Below are positions 2,766 through 22,599 of a stretch of 64,000 bases of DNA, piece by piece. The notes below the pieces were generated by a model. The model was not told the DNA's origin and made no database searches. It saw nothing but the letters and a program-made list of their open reading frames with translations. The number at the start of each line of letters is the position of its first letter. The first letter of the stretch is position 1. Location: sequence record LC819009.1; one strand, given 5' to 3'. A program made the translations under genes and the position numbers.

Positions 2766-2808
2766 GAGTCCCTACTCCCGCAAGGGAGTAGGGGGCTCTG
2801 ACTTTATG
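2766..2808. terminator. Bidirectional hairpin terminator between convergent genes
   Basis: Long stem with GCAA loop; A-run on the left, TATG on the right. Confidence 0.8.
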
Positions 2809-3316
2809 TTGACTCTCTCTTGTCAACATAAAAATAACCCTTAAACTTTTCACTACTACTGTTAATTCGAAACTTAATTGTAGCTCTATTTATTCCAGTA
2901 GCTTCACTGGCTTTAGCAAACGACGGATAGACGACACCATCGATTGAAACCGGTTTGCTATTTTTTTCGATGGATTTTTCATGAGCTTTTAGCAGTCCCT
3001 GTTTCTGCTCTTCTGTTTGAACTCTTGAAGAATGCACGGTTTTCATTCTCGCCTTGGTTTCTTCAGAATGGCGGAAATTGCGACGAAATTCAGCCATTTT
3101 TTCTCTAGTCGCATCTGAAACTTTTCGACCAATCAAACTCGCCATCAGTTTACTTTTCTGATTAGAGTTAATTTTCCGTCCAAGGCCAGCGCGACCAATA
3201 TTAATCTTTCGCGTATCTTCTACAATTTTTGCATCTAAAGATTTCTGCCAGGATTGGGTAATTTGATCAATTGTCTCATTGATTTCATCTATCGATAGCG
3301 GCTTTCCGTGATTCAT
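2804..3316 (-). CDS. NUMOD3-repeat plus NUMOD1-like HTH DNA-binding protein (homing endonuclease-derived, no nuclease domain seen)
   Basis: Repeats GRKVSDATREKM and FRHSEETKARM; C-terminal KPVSIDGVVYPSFAKASEATGINRATIKFRI; GAGGA RBS before ATG 3316; AT-rich. Confidence 0.75.
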   Translation of the reverse strand: MNHGKPLSIDEINETIDQITQSWQKSLDAKIVEDTRKINIGRAGLGRKINSNQKSKLMASLIGRKVSDATREKMAEFRRNFRHSEETKARMKTVHSSRVQTEEQKQGLLKAHEKSIEKNSKPVSIDGVVYPSFAKASEATGINRATIKFRINSSSEKFKGYFYVDKREST

Positions 3317-3382
3317 TTTGTCCTCGCAAATCAAAGACAGATCTAACAAACCCTCTCCGAAGAAAGAGTTTGTAAAACTGTC

Positions 3383-4234
3383 TTAGTTCAAATGGGTTTC
3401 CCAGTAATCGGGATAGTCGCTGGGATGATTGATCATTTCAGCAGCAAGCTCCTTGATCGCACGCATACTGACCGAACCCAATCGATCCCAGTTATGATCC
3501 AGCCAATGCAACAGTTCCTGCTTTTGCGCCTTCGTCAGATCGAAGATCTTGTTCTTCATTGTCACTGATGCAGTCCAGCCCCAGCTGACATCGCGATCGT
3601 ACTTGAATTCCGTGTAAACAACGCGATCGCGTATTGCTGATTCGTCGATCTTGCGGGCACCCTTAGGAGCCGGATTGGACGGAGCAAGAGACTGGTTGCT
3701 GGTGATAATGAAGTTAATGTTGTCGGTCGGAATCTGGATACCAACACCGTCCGCTGTTTGGAAAGCGCGCAGTGCTTCTGCAACGCGTTGCTCGTGGACC
3801 GATTCGCTCTTTTCATAAAGCTGAATCATCGCCGTCATGTTCTTGTTCCATGCGAACATATTGCGATCTTCATCTAGAGCACCCTTCATGACCGACAGAC
3901 TGGTACGATCAGCAAAAACCGAATCACAGTCATCGATCCAAACGTAGGTTTTCTTCCCACGAGAATTATGAACAGCCAAAGCTAGAGCGATAGCGATGGC
4001 ATTCATGCTGGCCACGCCGATGATTTCGATCAGAGGAATACGATGTTTCTTTGCCGTGTTCCGAACAGTCACGGACTTACCGATACCTGCGGGACCGACG
4101 ATGTAGTGGTGTCGTTTCGGAACGATAAGGGCATCCGACTTGTCGAAAGCCGCTGTGACTTTACCAACGAGTTGATTGGTCAGGATTTCGCCGCGCTCGA
4201 TGTTTTGTTTTTGTTTGAGGGTAAACGGTTGCAT
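3383..4234 (-). CDS. AAA-family P-loop ATPase
   Basis: Walker A GPAGIGKS, Walker B VWIDDCD, sensor-like IITSN, AIRDR arginine-finger-like motif. Confidence 0.85.
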   Translation of the reverse strand: MQPFTLKQKQNIERGEILTNQLVGKVTAAFDKSDALIVPKRHHYIVGPAGIGKSVTVRNTAKKHRIPLIEIIGVASMNAIAIALALAVHNSRGKKTYVWIDDCDSVFADRTSLSVMKGALDEDRNMFAWNKNMTAMIQLYEKSESVHEQRVAEALRAFQTADGVGIQIPTDNINFIITSNQSLAPSNPAPKGARKIDESAIRDRVVYTEFKYDRDVSWGWTASVTMKNKIFDLTKAQKQELLHWLDHNWDRLGSVSMRAIKELAAEMINHPSDYPDYWETHLN

Positions 4235-4262
4235 CTTCTACTCCATTTTAAAAAGATTAAAC

Positions 4263-4292
4263 ACAGACAGATGCCCGAAGGCATCTGTCTGT
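4263..4292 (-). repeat. Intergenic hairpin sharing a 26-nt core with 8715-8744
   Basis: AGACAGATGCCCGAAGGCATCTGTCT present at both sites; cUUCGg loop on the minus strand. Confidence 0.85.
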
Positions 4293-4302
4293 GATCAAGA
4301 GG

Positions 4303-4488
4303 TTATGCGCCTTTAACTTGCTTCTCTTGAATCAAGCGAACCATCCGCTTGTAGACTTCGACGAAGGTAAAACGATATCCTGCTTTAGCCAGAGCGTTTT
4401 CAACGTCTTCGGCCGGAGTTAGAATACCGTTCTTGTCCATCGTGTCGAGAATGATCTTCTCGATCTTATCTTCTTCACTCAGAAGCAT
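4303..4488 (-). CDS. Small winged-helix-like protein
   Basis: 61 aa, GAGGTG RBS, KIILDTMDKNG...VYKRMVRLIQEKQV. Confidence 0.55.
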   Translation of the reverse strand: MLLSEEDKIEKIILDTMDKNGILTPAEDVENALAKAGYRFTFVEVYKRMVRLIQEKQVKGA

Positions 4489-4894
4489 CTTTCACCTCAG
4501 CAGAAGCCGATACAACCGGTTCAGGCGGCGTCAGATACTCGCTGATCAGTTCCATCATCGAATCCGTCAGCACGTAGCCCTTCTTGGTCGGATGGGCCAC
4601 GCCGTCGACATGCAGATCCACCAGCAAGTTGCTGATATTCATCTGCGGCATGAAGACGTTTGCTTCACGCATCTTCTTGAGCAGCAGGTTTTCGTTGATG
4701 GGTTTGTTTTCGCCGAGATACAACGTACGGACGATGAAACCCGAAGCCGTGATGTTCGCATGGCCGCCGTAACCTTCGATGGTCTTGGTTTCGACGGATT
4801 CCTTGCTACGAAAGCACGCCGCCGCCATCGACTGGATCCGTCGGAAGCCCTTGCCGTTTCGATCGATTTTTAGCATTTTTAATTGATACCTCAA
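4475..4894 (-). CDS. Winged-helix-like protein (start may be ATG 4876)
   Basis: ISNLLVDLHVDGVAHPTKKGYVLT recognition-helix and wing pattern. Confidence 0.6.
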   Translation of the reverse strand: MRYQLKMLKIDRNGKGFRRIQSMAAACFRSKESVETKTIEGYGGHANITASGFIVRTLYLGENKPINENLLLKKMREANVFMPQMNISNLLVDLHVDGVAHPTKKGYVLTDSMMELISEYLTPPEPVVSASAEVKDASE

Positions 4895-5204
4895 AAATAA
4901 GTTCTCTCATGTCCTGCGTCAGCTTGAACATGTTTCCCGGAAGGGAGTGTACTGCGCCACGGTCTTTCAGAAACCGAAACGCCTTTTTGACATTATAGTC
5001 GGTGGCGCTGGTAATCTTTGCATGCCTCAGGTCAACTGCTACCTGAATGAAGTTATAGGGCTGGTCAGGAAAAACCAGTAAGCGTTTTAAAACCAGGACG
5101 TTTAGTCCGCCCTGAAAGCCTGATACCATTGTTGCTTGTTGGGCTAACTCACGCATCTGCGCGTCTGCTTTATTGAGCTTAGGTTGTTCTTTCAGGGCCG
5201 ACAT
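4806..5204 (-). CDS. Winged-helix-like protein
   Basis: VKKAFRFLKDRGAVHSLPGNMFKLT pattern. Confidence 0.6.
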   Translation of the reverse strand: MSALKEQPKLNKADAQMRELAQQATMVSGFQGGLNVLVLKRLLVFPDQPYNFIQVAVDLRHAKITSATDYNVKKAFRFLKDRGAVHSLPGNMFKLTQDMRELIFEVSIKNAKNRSKRQGLPTDPVDGGGVLS

Positions 5205-5213
5205 CAGTCGCTC

Positions 5214-5543
5214 CTAGTGTTTAGTCATCGCCTGAGAAAGAATCAGGTCGAAGATCGACGTCATCTCCGGATGGAGGCGATATGCCACGTTCGGAAACGA
5301 AGTCTTGGTTGCGAGGATTCCCTTCTGCAACAGATCCGTACATGCGTCACGCAGCATGTCGGTGATGTGGATGCTGTCGCATCCATAGATAGCGAATGCC
5401 ATGTCTTGAAGCGACTTGGACTCACCATCCTTATCCTTCAGGTAGAACACTACCTTGTGCTGGGTATCCCAGTTGTCTTGCGGCTTTGCTGCAATGATGA
5501 CGGCTTCTGCCATCTGGCGACGCCACATTTGTTGTGCTGACAT
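5214..5543 (-). CDS. Winged-helix-like protein
   Basis: LRDACTDLLQKGILATKTSFPNVAYRLH pattern. Confidence 0.6.
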   Translation of the reverse strand: MSAQQMWRRQMAEAVIIAAKPQDNWDTQHKVVFYLKDKDGESKSLQDMAFAIYGCDSIHITDMLRDACTDLLQKGILATKTSFPNVAYRLHPEMTSIFDLILSQAMTKH

Positions 5544-5552
5544 TTTGTCCTC

Positions 5553-6101
5553 TTATTCAAAAGCCTTCTGTTGTTTGAGGATGGCGTAAAGATCGATAGC
5601 TTCCTGTTTAGTAAGCTTCGACCTGCCTACATGGATGTGTTCGAGGTTTTGTTGTGTCTCGAACAACCACAAAACATTCTTGTAAAACTGATACAGGTCG
5701 CCGATCTTGACGTTGTTGCCTTTGACCTTGATATTGACATCGAGTAGGAATTGCTTACCCTTCTCACCCGTGTAGCTCGACATCAAGCTCACGAAATCAA
5801 GCGTCAGCGAATACAGCGTTGGACGATCGCCGATAATCGTACCCATCGGTTGCCAGCCTTTCAGAACCCCAGCATCGAGCAGGTCCTGCAAAGCAGTCTC
5901 GACTTCGGTCGTCGAGTACTTACCAAATGCCGTAAGACGATGGATGATTTCTTTACCATCATGTCCTTCCGGATGGCGGCTTTGTTCCGACAACAGCTGA
6001 ACGATGCATTCTTCAGCCGACAGATCGCTACCATACTTGATCGATGCACATGCAACAGCAACCAGCTTCTTGATGATTGCGTTGTTTTTATCGAGTTTCA
6101 T
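5553..6101 (-). CDS. Winged-helix-like protein
   Basis: VETALQDLLDAGVLKGW...PTLYSLT; GGAG RBS before ATG 6101. Confidence 0.6.
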   Translation of the reverse strand: MKLDKNNAIIKKLVAVACASIKYGSDLSAEECIVQLLSEQSRHPEGHDGKEIIHRLTAFGKYSTTEVETALQDLLDAGVLKGWQPMGTIIGDRPTLYSLTLDFVSLMSSYTGEKGKQFLLDVNIKVKGNNVKIGDLYQFYKNVLWLFETQQNLEHIHVGRSKLTKQEAIDLYAILKQQKAFE

Positions 6102-6150
6102 TTTAGCTCCGTGAAAGGAATTGTAAAGTTTACTACAGGGATTCACGGCA

Positions 6151-6167
6151 GTTATATATGTCTGAAA
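6151..6167 (-). promoter_or_regulatory. Putative early phage promoter
   Basis: TTTCAGACATATATAAC, matches the motif found at 7 intergenic sites. Confidence 0.7.
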
Positions 6168-6173
6168 TAAAAT

Positions 6174-6210
6174 GCATACTCATACACACTGGCGCAAGCC
6201 AGTGTGTATG
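6174..6210 (-). terminator. Hairpin terminator with TATG tail
   Basis: CATACACACTGGC-GCAA-GCCAGTGTGTATG perfect stem. Confidence 0.75.
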
Positions 6211-6218
6211 ATGAGCGC

Positions 6219-6539
6219 TTATGCTGCGATTTTAAAATTGCAAATACGGTCGATCTCCAGCCTTGTCCGCAAACGCAGACGCGACTCCTTATGCAGGCGT
6301 ACGTGATTGATGGAGAAGATACGACGTTCAACCTTGTATCCCTCCGGAGTCACGAAACGACTCTTCAGGTAACCCCGTTTTTCAAGAAGCTCCATCGTCT
6401 CCATCAGACCGTCAGCAGACAACTTACCTTCTGCATCACGGACAATGTCGGACGAAGTCTTCTCGACCCCGTAAGGCGCTTTAAGAAGATCAAGAATCTG
6501 TTCTTCCAGCGCTGTTAGTTTTTGTTGGTCCAGTTCCAT
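6219..6539 (-). CDS. PadR/MarR-like winged-helix protein
   Basis: EEQILDLLK...LMETMELLEKRGYLKSRF...RRIFSIN. Confidence 0.65.
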   Translation of the reverse strand: MELDQQKLTALEEQILDLLKAPYGVEKTSSDIVRDAEGKLSADGLMETMELLEKRGYLKSRFVTPEGYKVERRIFSINHVRLHKESRLRLRTRLEIDRICNFKIAA

Positions 6540-6568
6540 TTTCTAAGGTCTCGTAGAAGTTCTTGTTA

Positions 6569-6745
6569 TTAGACCCGTGCGGTGTTGTTCATGGACTTCT
6601 GGTCACCGTGCCTGTTGCGGCTCGTAAGACCATTGGGATGAACATCCGATTTCTCGGTTTGTTTGATGTCCTGCCTGATTGCAGGGCTGAGTGGATTCTC
6701 GGCTTTAAAGCCGCCCCACTTTGTGGTGCCGTTTCCTGGTGACAT
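6569..6745 (-). CDS. Small hypothetical protein (58 aa, below ORF-track cutoff)
   Basis: Hand-translated MSPGNGTTKWGGFKAENPLSP...NNTARV*. Confidence 0.45.
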   Translation of the reverse strand: MSPGNGTTKWGGFKAENPLSPAIRQDIKQTEKSDVHPNGLTSRNRHGDQKSMNNTARV

Positions 6746-6838
6746 TTTTATTACCCGTCCTTACTGGTGAAAAACCACAGGATCAGCGAAAAAAATAATA
6801 GTCCGCCCCGTTAAGAGCGGACCCTCCATTAGCGTAGA

Positions 6839-7006
6839 TTAACTACGCTTCTTAGCTGCCCGGCTTTTGCTGATGTGGGCTTCGATGCGCCTATCTTCTT
6901 CCATGAGTTTTCGGGCTTGTTCCTGAGTCATGTGATGCCGTTTCGCAATATCTTCATTGTGAGCGGCAGCTTGGAACAACTTTCTCTGACTAGGTGAGTA
7001 CGGCAT
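6839..7006 (-). CDS. Small basic phage protein (55 aa, below ORF-track cutoff)
   Basis: GAGGAGG RBS; MPYSPSQRKLFQAAAHNEDIAKRHHMTQEQARKLMEED...KKRS*. Confidence 0.75.
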   Translation of the reverse strand: MPYSPSQRKLFQAAAHNEDIAKRHHMTQEQARKLMEEDRRIEAHISKSRAAKKRS

Positions 7007-7093
7007 TTTCAAACCTCCTCAACGGAAAAAATGCGACCGAACCCCGAAGGATCCAGTCGCCCAACTTACCGGGCTGAGGCTCCCGGTAATCCT

Positions 7094-8683
7094 TTACTGC
7101 TGTTCGCCATCCGGACCCGGATAGTCGATCGACGACTTCACCACCCAATCCGAAAGAGGCGGTTTACCTTCCAGGCTGCGAATGAAGTTCTTCACTCGTA
7201 CTTCGAACGGCATTACACGTCCGTCGTACGTTTCGTACAGATGGTCGACCAATGCTGCGATGAACGCGTTCAGCTTCGTTTCACGATCCGGATCAGTCAG
7301 ATCGATCTTCAGCATGTTCGGGTTGATGTAGTGTTCGACTGCTGCACGAATGAAGTACTTCGGGTCTTCCGGATTAGCGAAACGGTTGAACTTCTGATCC
7401 GTCTCTTCAAACAAAGGACCAGGTTCGACACCTGGGAAAGTTCCCCAGACGTGAGCAATCAACGTACGCTTGATCGTTTCGAATTGCGACATGCGTTCTT
7501 CTTCTGTGCCTTCCAGATAGAAGAGACTCGGCGACAGGTAGTTCTCGACAGCTTGTCGGACCAACAGAAGCTGCTTGTAGTCCGGATACTGCTGAAGCTT
7601 CACGCCTTCATGACCTGCCGATTGACGCATTTCGCTCAACGCCAGCTTTTTGGCAGAAGAACGCGATGCGACCATCGTGTCGTAGACGGTTTTGAACTTC
7701 GTATCGTAAGCAACCATCTGGTCCTTGTAGACAACGTTCGGAACCAGATTCTTTTCGACGATGCGAACGGTAGCACCGATACATTGTTGCTGGAACAAAG
7801 ATTCCCACGGTTCGGGCTTCACAGCCGTCTCGTATTGTTCATCGTTCCAGGTAACCGGGATACCCAGCACCCGAAGCTTATCGGCGATGATACCACACAG
7901 TGCCGACTTACCCACGCCGGTACGACCCATCACCACGACACGAATGTCCCCACCATTCAGGTAGTCGAGTGGAAGACCCTGACGACCCAGAACAGCCAAT
8001 GTCCATGCCACGGCACCATCCCACATGACGCGAGCATTCTTCGTGTCATAATGACCGTACTGATTAGGATAGTGCGGATGGTCCGGATCGTAACGCTGGA
8101 CATCCTTGATGAAGTTCTGCTGACGCGCGAACGATTCGAACGCCTTGGTATCGTCGACGATGACGTCCGGCCGCTGTTCGATCAAACCGGTCTGCCAGCC
8201 ATATGGCTCGATCTTGACTTCATGATAGCGGGCCAGTTGACGAACGTAAGCGACCGCATCGGACTCGTGCCAGAAATCGACGGAGTGTTTTACCATTCCG
8301 TTTTCGTAGCGCGAATAGACGCCGTAGCCTTTCGTTTCATCATTAGCGCCGTCCATCTGAATTTCGATGGAACCCTGCTCCAGTTCCTTAAACGGAGCAA
8401 GCTGAAGACCGATGATCTTACCCGCCTTTTTATCGACGGTATGTTGGCCGATGTAGACAGGTATTTTGTATTCGTAGGCGAGGTTGGTCGCCGTTGCTGC
8501 AGCCTGACCGATGTCGGTGAAGTAATTCGGATCGACTGGACTCAGGCTGCTGTCTTCGTGTTCCCAGAACAGAATCCAGCCAGCGAACCCGCGTTCGCCC
8601 TTCGCTTCAAATGCACCGACTACTTCACCATCGAGGTTTTTCACTGCGGGAATAACGCGAACCGACTTTGCTTTGTTTTGCAT
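7094..8683 (-). CDS. Mosaic hypothetical protein with a short P-loop module
   Basis: VVVMGRTGVGKSALCGIIADKL; AAGGTG RBS before ATG 8683. Confidence 0.75.
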   Translation of the reverse strand: MQNKAKSVRVIPAVKNLDGEVVGAFEAKGERGFAGWILFWEHEDSSLSPVDPNYFTDIGQAAATATNLAYEYKIPVYIGQHTVDKKAGKIIGLQLAPFKELEQGSIEIQMDGANDETKGYGVYSRYENGMVKHSVDFWHESDAVAYVRQLARYHEVKIEPYGWQTGLIEQRPDVIVDDTKAFESFARQQNFIKDVQRYDPDHPHYPNQYGHYDTKNARVMWDGAVAWTLAVLGRQGLPLDYLNGGDIRVVVMGRTGVGKSALCGIIADKLRVLGIPVTWNDEQYETAVKPEPWESLFQQQCIGATVRIVEKNLVPNVVYKDQMVAYDTKFKTVYDTMVASRSSAKKLALSEMRQSAGHEGVKLQQYPDYKQLLLVRQAVENYLSPSLFYLEGTEEERMSQFETIKRTLIAHVWGTFPGVEPGPLFEETDQKFNRFANPEDPKYFIRAAVEHYINPNMLKIDLTDPDRETKLNAFIAALVDHLYETYDGRVMPFEVRVKNFIRSLEGKPPLSDWVVKSSIDYPGPDGEQQ

Positions 8684-8703
8684 GTTGTACACCTTTTAAA
8701 AAG

Positions 8704-15099: not shown

Positions 15100-15190
15100 T
15101 AGCCTCTCCTCATTTTAAAAAGTTGGTGTTTCGGTACAAAATAAAAAGCCCCGCTATGAAAAATAACGGGGCCTAACATCACCTCCCTAA

Positions 15191-18239: not shown

Positions 18240-18259
18240 TCTTACCTCATTTTAAAAGT

Positions 18260-20292: not shown

Positions 20293-20745
20293 TCATTTTA
20301 AAATGATTGAGGACAACGCTGCGATGGCGTATTTATCGCCTGCCATACTTTCGCATGTTGCTCTAAGTGCTTCTACATCACAAGCTCGTTCCAACGCCAG
20401 ACGTTCATCATCCGCTTTCATTTGGATGAATTTCAGCTTCGCACGAATGGCGCGGTAATACGGACGGATTTCGTTCACACATGCTCTCAGCACGGTCAGG
20501 ATATCTTTGCCCGGACCATCTTCGTAAAACAGCTTATGCAAGAGAGGTTGGTTTTCATCGTTGGGCGGCAGCAACAACAATTCCCGACATACCGCCATGC
20601 GTATGTATTCGTAGCGCGCATGAACCGCGGCTACGCTAATGCCGAAATCCTTGCCGACACGGGCAAACCCTTTACCCTCGAAAACGATTTCTTCGAAGAT
20701 ACCGAAATAGCCATTCAGGTTTTCCAATGTCTGCATGGCGATCAC
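20293..20745 (-). CDS. Protein with N-terminal sigma-70 region-4-like HTH
   Basis: IFEEIVFEGKGFARVGKDFGISVAAVHARYEYIR. Confidence 0.5.
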   Translation of the reverse strand: MIAMQTLENLNGYFGIFEEIVFEGKGFARVGKDFGISVAAVHARYEYIRMAVCRELLLLPPNDENQPLLHKLFYEDGPGKDILTVLRACVNEIRPYYRAIRAKLKFIQMKADDERLALERACDVEALRATCESMAGDKYAIAALSSIILK

Positions 20746-22480: not shown

Positions 22481-22599
22481 TCACCTGTAATTATTTTAAA
22501 AACGGACTGTCCTGTTATTAGGACAGGCTTTTCCCCCCAGGTTCAAACATTATCGCAGACGAGTTAGTTTTACTCGCTTGTCTACAGAACTTCAGTTGG

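Follow-up and report, generated by a model that had tools for sequence, protein, structure and literature searches.

A tandem array of five, possibly six, diverged putative winged-helix genes in the Ralstonia jumbo phage FLC4-5C

Are six adjacent small genes copies of one ancestral gene even if standard sequence comparison cannot connect their products, and what might such products do? This question is raised by positions 4303 to 6539 of a 64,000-nucleotide stretch (the window; window coordinates equal those of record LC819009.1 minus 124,000) of the 225.6-kb genome of Ralstonia phage FLC4-5C, a phiKZ-related jumbo phage of the genus Chiangmaivirus, which window positions 3300-7100 match with 100% identity. 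A sequence-only reading of the window had proposed here an array of six highly diverged paralogs with a winged helix-turn-helix (wHTH) fold. The six consecutive open reading frames (ORFs) are present, all on the minus strand, and match the GenBank coding sequences gp136 to gp131, annotated as hypothetical, between gp137 (a small basic gene) on one side and gp130 (an AAA ATPase) on the other. The ratio of nonsynonymous to synonymous substitution rates (dN/dS) of gp131-gp136 against relatives is 0.09-0.49, compared to 0.06-0.07 for DnaB, and since this shows purifying selection we regard all six as real genes. The close relatives FLC8, FLC4-11C, FLC6, RSL2, RsoM3USA, SURPRISE13 and RSF1 are all Chiangmaivirus phages of Ralstonia and Burkholderia with genomes of about 225 kb. 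Genes of this group encode split multisubunit RNA polymerases, PhuZ and a nuclear-shell homologue (PMC5468394, PMC11898562).

The genes gp132 to gp136, and possibly gp131, probably go back to one small winged-helix gene that was duplicated in tandem several times and whose copies diverged rapidly. For the whole reading, in which this duplicated family would act as a set of diversified DNA-binding regulators, we estimate a probability of roughly 55%.

Relationship and fold of the array proteins

Pairwise BLASTP among the six array proteins gave nothing significant, and the family is indeed highly diverged. hhalign with shallow alignments (3-6 sequences from GenBank relatives) gave nothing either, apart from a hint for gp133-gp132. 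A strict form of the wHTH motif that had been claimed for all six ORFs (hydrophobic..L...G.[LVIA], then [YF].[LI][THSN] within 20 residues) occurs once in each of gp132-gp136 and a single time in the remaining long ORFs of the genome (132,201 residues); it is absent from gp131. As the motif was derived from these very genes, the count serves to illustrate enrichment, and we relied on independent tests instead. The BLASTP result, the empty shallow profiles and the definition of the motif after inspection of the genes would all fit a chance resemblance, in which small helical ORFs without common descent or a winged-helix fold happen to have a loose motif in common. We consider this explanation very improbable, because deeper profiles connect gp135, gp133 and gp132 with high significance and give a good score for gp134, independent structural evidence concurs and control families stay unconnected.

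For these deeper profiles, six metagenome contigs covering the syntenic region, each with a gp136 at 71-77% identity, joined the GenBank relatives, so that the family alignments comprised 9-13 sequences; for gp135 the deepest alignment, of 17 sequences, came from a representative-protein search. The relatives contain the extra families F7, F11, F14, F15 and F18. With the family alignments, hhalign connected gp135 with F7 (95%), gp133 with F7 (94%) and F7 with F15 (97%), and gp135 with the extra two-domain copies F11 (97%), F14 (80%) and F18 (77%); gp133 and gp132 were connected at 69% (P = 4.5e-5). The best P value reached by the control families (gp137, gp138, gp129, gp130 and F10) was 0.0036. 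A merged alignment of gp133, gp132, F7 and F15 matched the deepest gp135 alignment at 97% over 100 columns (E = 1.1e-10), and a hidden Markov model (HMM) built without gp135 sequences recovered gp135 at E = 8e-6 among the 2293 ORFs of the genome. Against the same gp135 alignment, gp134 reached 68.9% (E = 4.5e-5), gp136 25% (E = 7.7e-4, with matching secondary-structure register) and gp131 14% (E = 1.9e-3), the last covering only the recognition helix, the wing and the C-helix. An iterated HMM placed the gp134 family just under the threshold, in the twilight zone above all background (E about 2e-3), and never recruited gp136 or gp131. Family HMMs found no further members outside the array among the 2293 genome ORFs. 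In every pairwise family alignment the L..L...G.[LV] segment, the [YF].LT strand and the next helix lie in a common register.

By profile comparison, gp135, gp133 and gp132 are certainly paralogous. The all-vs-all profile alignment, which the sequence-only reading had named as a check, joined these three and gp134, and gp136 weakly, and left gp131 apart. A chance resemblance is thereby refuted for gp132-gp135 and possible only for gp131 and, less so, for gp136.

Structure models were made for two array proteins, gp135 and gp136, and searched with Foldseek, another of the proposed checks. The AlphaFold model of gp135 has a predicted local distance difference test (pLDDT) value of 86 and contains helices at residues 29-37, 49-57 and 64-76 and strands at 46-48, 80-83 and 96-99. 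The order of its elements is an extra N-terminal helix, H1, S1, H2, H3, a two-stranded wing, a helix, a low-confidence linker and a C-domain. Its top 50 matches in the PDB are all winged-helix proteins (probability 0.97-1.0, with E values of only 3e-3 to 4e-2); matches include TFIIE-alpha, PadR, Pex, the MarR-type proteins ZitR and MepR, Fur, ArsR and SSV1 F-93. In a viral structure library the model also matched, with its N-domain, BFVD entry A0A0A8J8B2 (target template modelling (TM) score 0.70, root-mean-square deviation 3.5), which an exact look-up identified as the RSL2 ortholog of gp134; another match there was RSF1 gp132 of family F14 (E = 2e-4). For gp136 the model is weak (pLDDT 58) and shows the topology helix-helix-helix-hairpin-long helix with the same order of elements as gp135, and all of its top 50 PDB matches are again winged-helix proteins, mostly PadR/LmrR. 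The hhalign alignment of gp136 with gp135 pairs each helix and strand of the model with its counterpart. gp132, gp133 and gp134 were placed on the gp135 fold via alignment, gp134 via the BFVD model as well.

The merged gp133/gp132/F7/F15 profile matched in the PDB, over about 70 residues, the DNA-binding domains of Zur (4mtd, E = 7e-4) and BlaI (1p6r, E = 0.011), followed by a CRP-family regulator (E = 0.019) and, further down, an MCM winged helix, eS19, a PhiH1 repressor-like protein, Fur, TFIIF and MepR. PDB searches with single-family profiles of gp136, gp135, gp134 and gp131 gave nothing significant. A winged-helix fold is therefore well supported for gp135 by its predicted structure and supported for gp133 and gp132 by their homology with gp135 together with the profile matches to Zur, BlaI and a CRP-family regulator. 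gp134 is very probably a winged-helix paralog, judging from its profile and the model of its ortholog. gp136 is probably a winged helix according to its model, and the profile alignment suggests that it descends from the same ancestor as the rest of the array. For gp131 neither the fold nor paralogy found support; its weak alignment would imply a remnant consisting of recognition helix, wing and C-helix only. Because fold support differs between the members and gp131 is not linked, the array comprises five members, possibly six.

Known proteins with a comparable layout differ from the array proteins in several respects. Members of the short PadR subfamily (LmrR, PadR; 3f8f, 8qdf, 5x11) have, like gp136, about 100-110 amino acids (aa) and a winged helix followed by a single long helix at the C-terminus. 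Foldseek ranked them first for the gp136 model (probability about 1.0, TM about 0.48) and matched them to gp135 as well, but there is no Pfam PadR match, identities are 15-20% with E values of only about 1e-2, and the gp136 model is of low confidence. Repressors of the MarR/Fur/BlaI type (Zur, BlaI, ZitR, MepR) share a winged helix with flanking N- and C-terminal helices. Unlike them, the array proteins have no metal-binding or sensor domain, stay below Pfam thresholds and are far smaller than the full helical scaffolds of MarR dimers. SSV1 F-93 (1tbx), an archaeal-virus winged helix of about 90 aa without a recognisable sequence family, matches the gp135 N-domain with a target TM of 0.66, but belongs to an unrelated virus and host and is not part of a tandem array.

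Members of the array and their distribution

The gene gp136 (6219..6539, 106 aa) encodes a probable winged helix with a basic wing and a long arginine-rich C-terminal helix. With 71-100% identity it is the most conserved array member, and it lies upstream of the promoter-like element of the operon, in a separate unit with gp137. The product of gp135 (5553..6101, 182 aa) has two predicted domains: an N-terminal winged helix with the extra N-terminal helix (residues 1-112, 5766-6101) and a C-terminal domain of beta-beta-alpha-beta-beta-alpha order (residues about 119-182, 5556-5747), for which no sequence relatives were found in PDB or Pfam. gp135-type proteins carry two different C-terminal domain types, and their N-terminal winged helix diverges faster than the C-domain. 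Extra two-domain gp135-like genes were observed in RSF1 (ORF132, L005 5649-6290) and in two of the metagenome contigs (L012 6441-7097 and 7129-7788; L008 9654-10253); they form families F14, F18 and F11.

The probable winged-helix paralog gp134 (5214..5543) has 109 aa (annotated 104 aa). The paralog gp133 (4806..5204, 132 aa, pI 10) has a basic tail and a basic recognition helix with conserved polar and basic residues at the helix start, and is the best candidate for DNA binding in the array. In RSL2 (L002, AP014693.1) an intact gp133 ortholog with 71% identity, missing from the GenBank annotation, was found at about 4274-4680. For the paralog gp132 (4475..4876, 133 aa; annotated 4475-4828, 117 aa) the start is most likely the ATG at 4876 instead of 4828: four relatives conserve the 16 upstream codons, which in alignments fall on the N-terminal helix of the paralogs. 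From this ATG, gp132 would overlap the 3' end of gp133 by 71 nt in a different frame (4806-4876); in metagenome relatives this overlap is shorter (26 nt), and in FLC6 and RsoM3USA gp132 lacks the extra N-terminal part. The 3' end of gp132 also overlaps the start of gp131 (4303..4488, 61 aa), the last gene of the operon and only a possible member of the family. gp131 was found only in the FLC phages and SURPRISE13. Other relatives (RSL2, RSF1, RsoM3USA) have F7, a clear paralog, at the same position.

The family is confined to Chiangmaivirus-type jumbo phages. A gp135 profile found only 13 representatives among 1.84 billion proteins, and a word-indexed search of a 5.8-billion collection gave 9 clusters for gp136 and 4 each for gp135 and gp131. 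A tblastn search of 50,697 phage genomes detected relatives only within the genus. The number of family members per genome ranges from 5 in FLC4-5C to 8-9 in the contigs L012 and L008. Compared to SURPRISE13, RSF1 and the contigs, gp135 is 36-59% and gp134 37-41% identical, DnaB 85-95%. The identities form a mosaic: in RSL2, gp134 is 91% and gp135 47% identical, and in RSF1 the relation is reversed, which points to an exchange of cassettes between phages.

This pattern bears on the main rival to a regulator function, according to which the winged helices are protein-binding modules of a host-takeover or counter-defence family (decoys, inhibitors) engaged in an arms race, each copy having its own host target. 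Rapid evolution and copy-number turnover relative to the flanking genes, mosaic exchange, the strictly lineage-restricted distribution and the divergence of the N-domain next to a conserved C-domain in gp135-type proteins would be expected of such a family. Acidic or neutral recognition helices in four members and the location of the genes behind an early-type promoter-like motif (see below) would also fit. However, profile and structure searches both led to DNA-binding domains as nearest neighbours, gp133 has a strongly basic character and conserves polar and basic residues where its recognition helix begins, and PADLOC revealed no likeness to known defence or anti-defence families. Moreover, whole-gene dN/dS stays below 0.5 in every array gene, so that no positive selection is visible at this level. 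We therefore regard the protein-binding explanation as rather unlikely.

The same distribution speaks against architectural proteins that would bind with little specificity for sequence and coat, protect or organise the genome in the phage nucleus. The winged-helix fold, the presence of several copies with predicted co-expression and the nuclear-shell and PhuZ homologues encoded by Chiangmaivirus-type phages (PMC11898562) would agree with such a role. However, other nucleus-forming phages do not have the family, basic members are in the minority, and the strong variation in copy number and sequence among close relatives would be unusual for a core architectural protein. This role appears improbable to us.

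Operon anatomy and surroundings

The claim that five of the genes lie under one promoter holds at the sequence level. On the minus strand, a terminator-like hairpin (6800..6823) upstream of gp137 bounds the gp137-gp136 unit. It is followed by gp137 and gp136 and then, in the interval between gp136 and the promoter-like element, by a perfect hairpin with a 14-bp stem and a 4-nt loop (6180..6211). This putative terminator or regulatory hairpin keeps its pairing in the relatives through compensatory changes in both arms. The AT-rich promoter-like element itself comprises 38 nt (6141..6178) with the core ATATATAAC at 6151-6159. Its long form is unique within the window, and it is nearly identical in 10 related phages and contigs, whereas the gene downstream is only 36-59% identical. 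The genes gp135-gp131 then follow with gaps of 9-10 nt or overlaps, and a strong intrinsic terminator with a 14-pair stem and a T-rich run (4262..4293, minus strand) closes the operon.

The core, in the form [AC]TATAT[AT]AC, occurs at 12 sites of the genome, all on the minus strand, where about 5 would be expected on both strands. The sites lie at genome positions 8113, 51109, 59534, 101265, 103421, 130159, 134622, 150820, 152890, 162363, 201706 and 223596, five of them at window positions 6159, 10622, 26820, 28890 and 38363. They share a T-rich TTTCA upstream and GTGA about 4 nt downstream, and several are directly upstream of genes (DNA ligase gp106, gp105, gp142, gp221, gp241 and gp11). Early promoters of jumbo phages encoding RNA polymerases have been described as an AT-rich motif of about 10 nt upstream of operons (PMC7598289). 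As the 12-site, single-strand class fits this description, it is a candidate for the early promoter class of FLC4-5C, and the early-type promoter claimed by the sequence-only reading is plausible.

Two other candidate sites were discarded. A sigma-70-like match at the start of gp135 was not accepted as a promoter, since the start codon coincides in part with its -10 element. The palindrome GAAGATCTTC, over-represented among 9-mers, was dropped as an operator, having only 5 copies in the genome, all in coding contexts.

A further palindromic core, TTTTAAAA, is present in 27 copies in the genome compared to about 2.6 expected. About 20 copies are located 10-25 nt upstream of minus-strand gene starts in the context c/tTTTTAAAAtgaGG. 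Sites in the window are 4245-4253, 8693-8700 and about ten more, e.g. 15112-15120, 18249-18257, 20295-20303 and 22493-22501. The element precedes gp130 and gp139, which flank the array, but does not precede any array gene; it may represent a second class of promoters or an element linked to translation. An 18-bp near-palindrome containing TTTTAAAA was also found at 6225-6242, in the last codons of gp136 and about 70 nt upstream of the promoter core. No relative shows a change in the central 12 bp of the near-palindrome or in the encoded C-terminus of gp136, and this conservation may act either at the protein level or at the DNA level (candidate operator).

In the surroundings, gp130 (3383-4234) encodes the AAA ATPase and gp129 (2804-3349) a protein with an I-TevI-type DNA-binding domain and a NUMOD3 motif, which make it homing-endonuclease-like; no catalytic domain was recognised in it. 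Both genes are present in FLC phages only, and two versions of gp129 are just 34% identical. In the interval from DnaB to the array, SURPRISE13 and some contigs have another gene, of about 330 aa. Because gp129 and gp130 are restricted to FLC phages and the gp129 versions diverge, this interval looks like a hot spot for insertions. On the other side, gp137 (6569-6745, 58 aa) and gp138 (6839-7012, about 55 aa) are very basic (pI about 10) and conserved upstream of the array in all relatives; they resemble neither the winged-helix family nor any Pfam family.

Possible function of the family

The predicted basic unit of the family begins with an N-terminal helix, continues with a winged-helix core of three helices and the wing, a beta-hairpin, and ends in a C-terminal helix; this layout is like that of small MarR- or PadR-type dimers. 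gp135 and its extra copies in the relatives have a conserved C-terminal domain in addition. By their sequence, the genes gp135-gp131 form one translationally coupled operon behind the conserved promoter-like element of the 12-member class. In the explanation we favour, the proteins would be made together and probably early. They would act as sequence-specific nucleic-acid-binding regulators with diverged recognition surfaces, each copy having its own target in phage or host DNA. The basic gp133 and gp136, with its basic wing and C-helix, would be the likeliest direct binders of DNA, and some copies with acidic recognition helices may have moved to protein contacts. No finding specifically favours the ideas of decoys, DNA organisers or anti-defence factors over ordinary sequence-specific regulators.

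Several observations weigh against this explanation. Neither the six proteins nor 28 relatives match a wHTH family in Pfam, even at E values up to 1; the gathering thresholds of MarR (PF01047/PF12802), PadR (PF03551) and other curated wHTH families are not reached. NCBI-type families were not matched at all, PADLOC gave matches at chance level only (E = 0.015-0.023), and in PHROGs the array proteins match only orphan groups from the same phages. The low confidence of the gp136 model and the unlinked status of gp131 also count here. The support for DNA binding is indirect, coming from profile matches to DNA-binding domains and the basic character of gp133; gp135, gp134, gp132 and gp136 have neutral to acidic recognition helices, and the whole-protein pI of gp135, gp134 and gp132 is 5.4-7. 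We found no recurring operator-like site that could be assigned to the array proteins. The expression timing is deduced from the motif, and RSL2 and RSF1 have been reported to be rifampicin-sensitive and to need the host RNA polymerase (PMC5468394).

A more specific role would be that of promoter-selectivity or timing factors resembling TFE/TFIIE, which steer the multisubunit RNA polymerases of the phage to promoter classes, one of which might be the TTTTAAAA element that precedes about 20 genes at a distance of 10-25 nt. Sigma factors are missing from the host-like RNA polymerases of this phage group (PMC7824862), and TFIIE-alpha/archaeal TFE (5gpy_A, 7nvs_W, 6kf4_G) is the best Foldseek match of the two-domain gp135, covering its full length (E = 2.9e-3), with a TM of only 0.36. 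Unlike TFIIE-alpha and TFE, the C-domain of gp135 has no zinc ribbon, as it contains no cysteines, and the array family is not conserved in other phages with the same polymerases. We think it doubtful, and indeed improbable, that the array has this role.

If the array proteins did act in this manner, this would explain how middle and late transcription is programmed in Chiangmaivirus-type phages. Little is understood of how phiKZ-like nucleus-forming phages control transcription. Their polymerases lack a sigma factor, and the purified enzyme does not read middle promoters (PMC7598289). Own HTH/wHTH transcription factors are encoded by 92% of jumbo phages, with 1-15 factors per phage and lineage-specific expansions in some, e.g. 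of Myb-type HTH proteins and zinc ribbons in Bacillus phage G (Iyer et al. 2021, PMC7824862). As such expansions have already been reported, the array is a new example of a known phenomenon and not a new kind. It differs from the reported expansions in matching no existing profile library and in being a contiguous operon that mixes one-domain and two-domain members.

The array illustrates that a gene family can diverge past BLAST recognition inside one operon, and that the arrays of relatives allow the links to be recovered. With five to nine lineage-specific winged-helix proteins, predicted to be co-transcribed and unrecognised by annotation pipelines, Chiangmaivirus-type phages possess a set of candidate regulators or host-takeover factors. 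This is of relevance because these phages are under development as biocontrol agents against Burkholderia and the plant pathogen Ralstonia.

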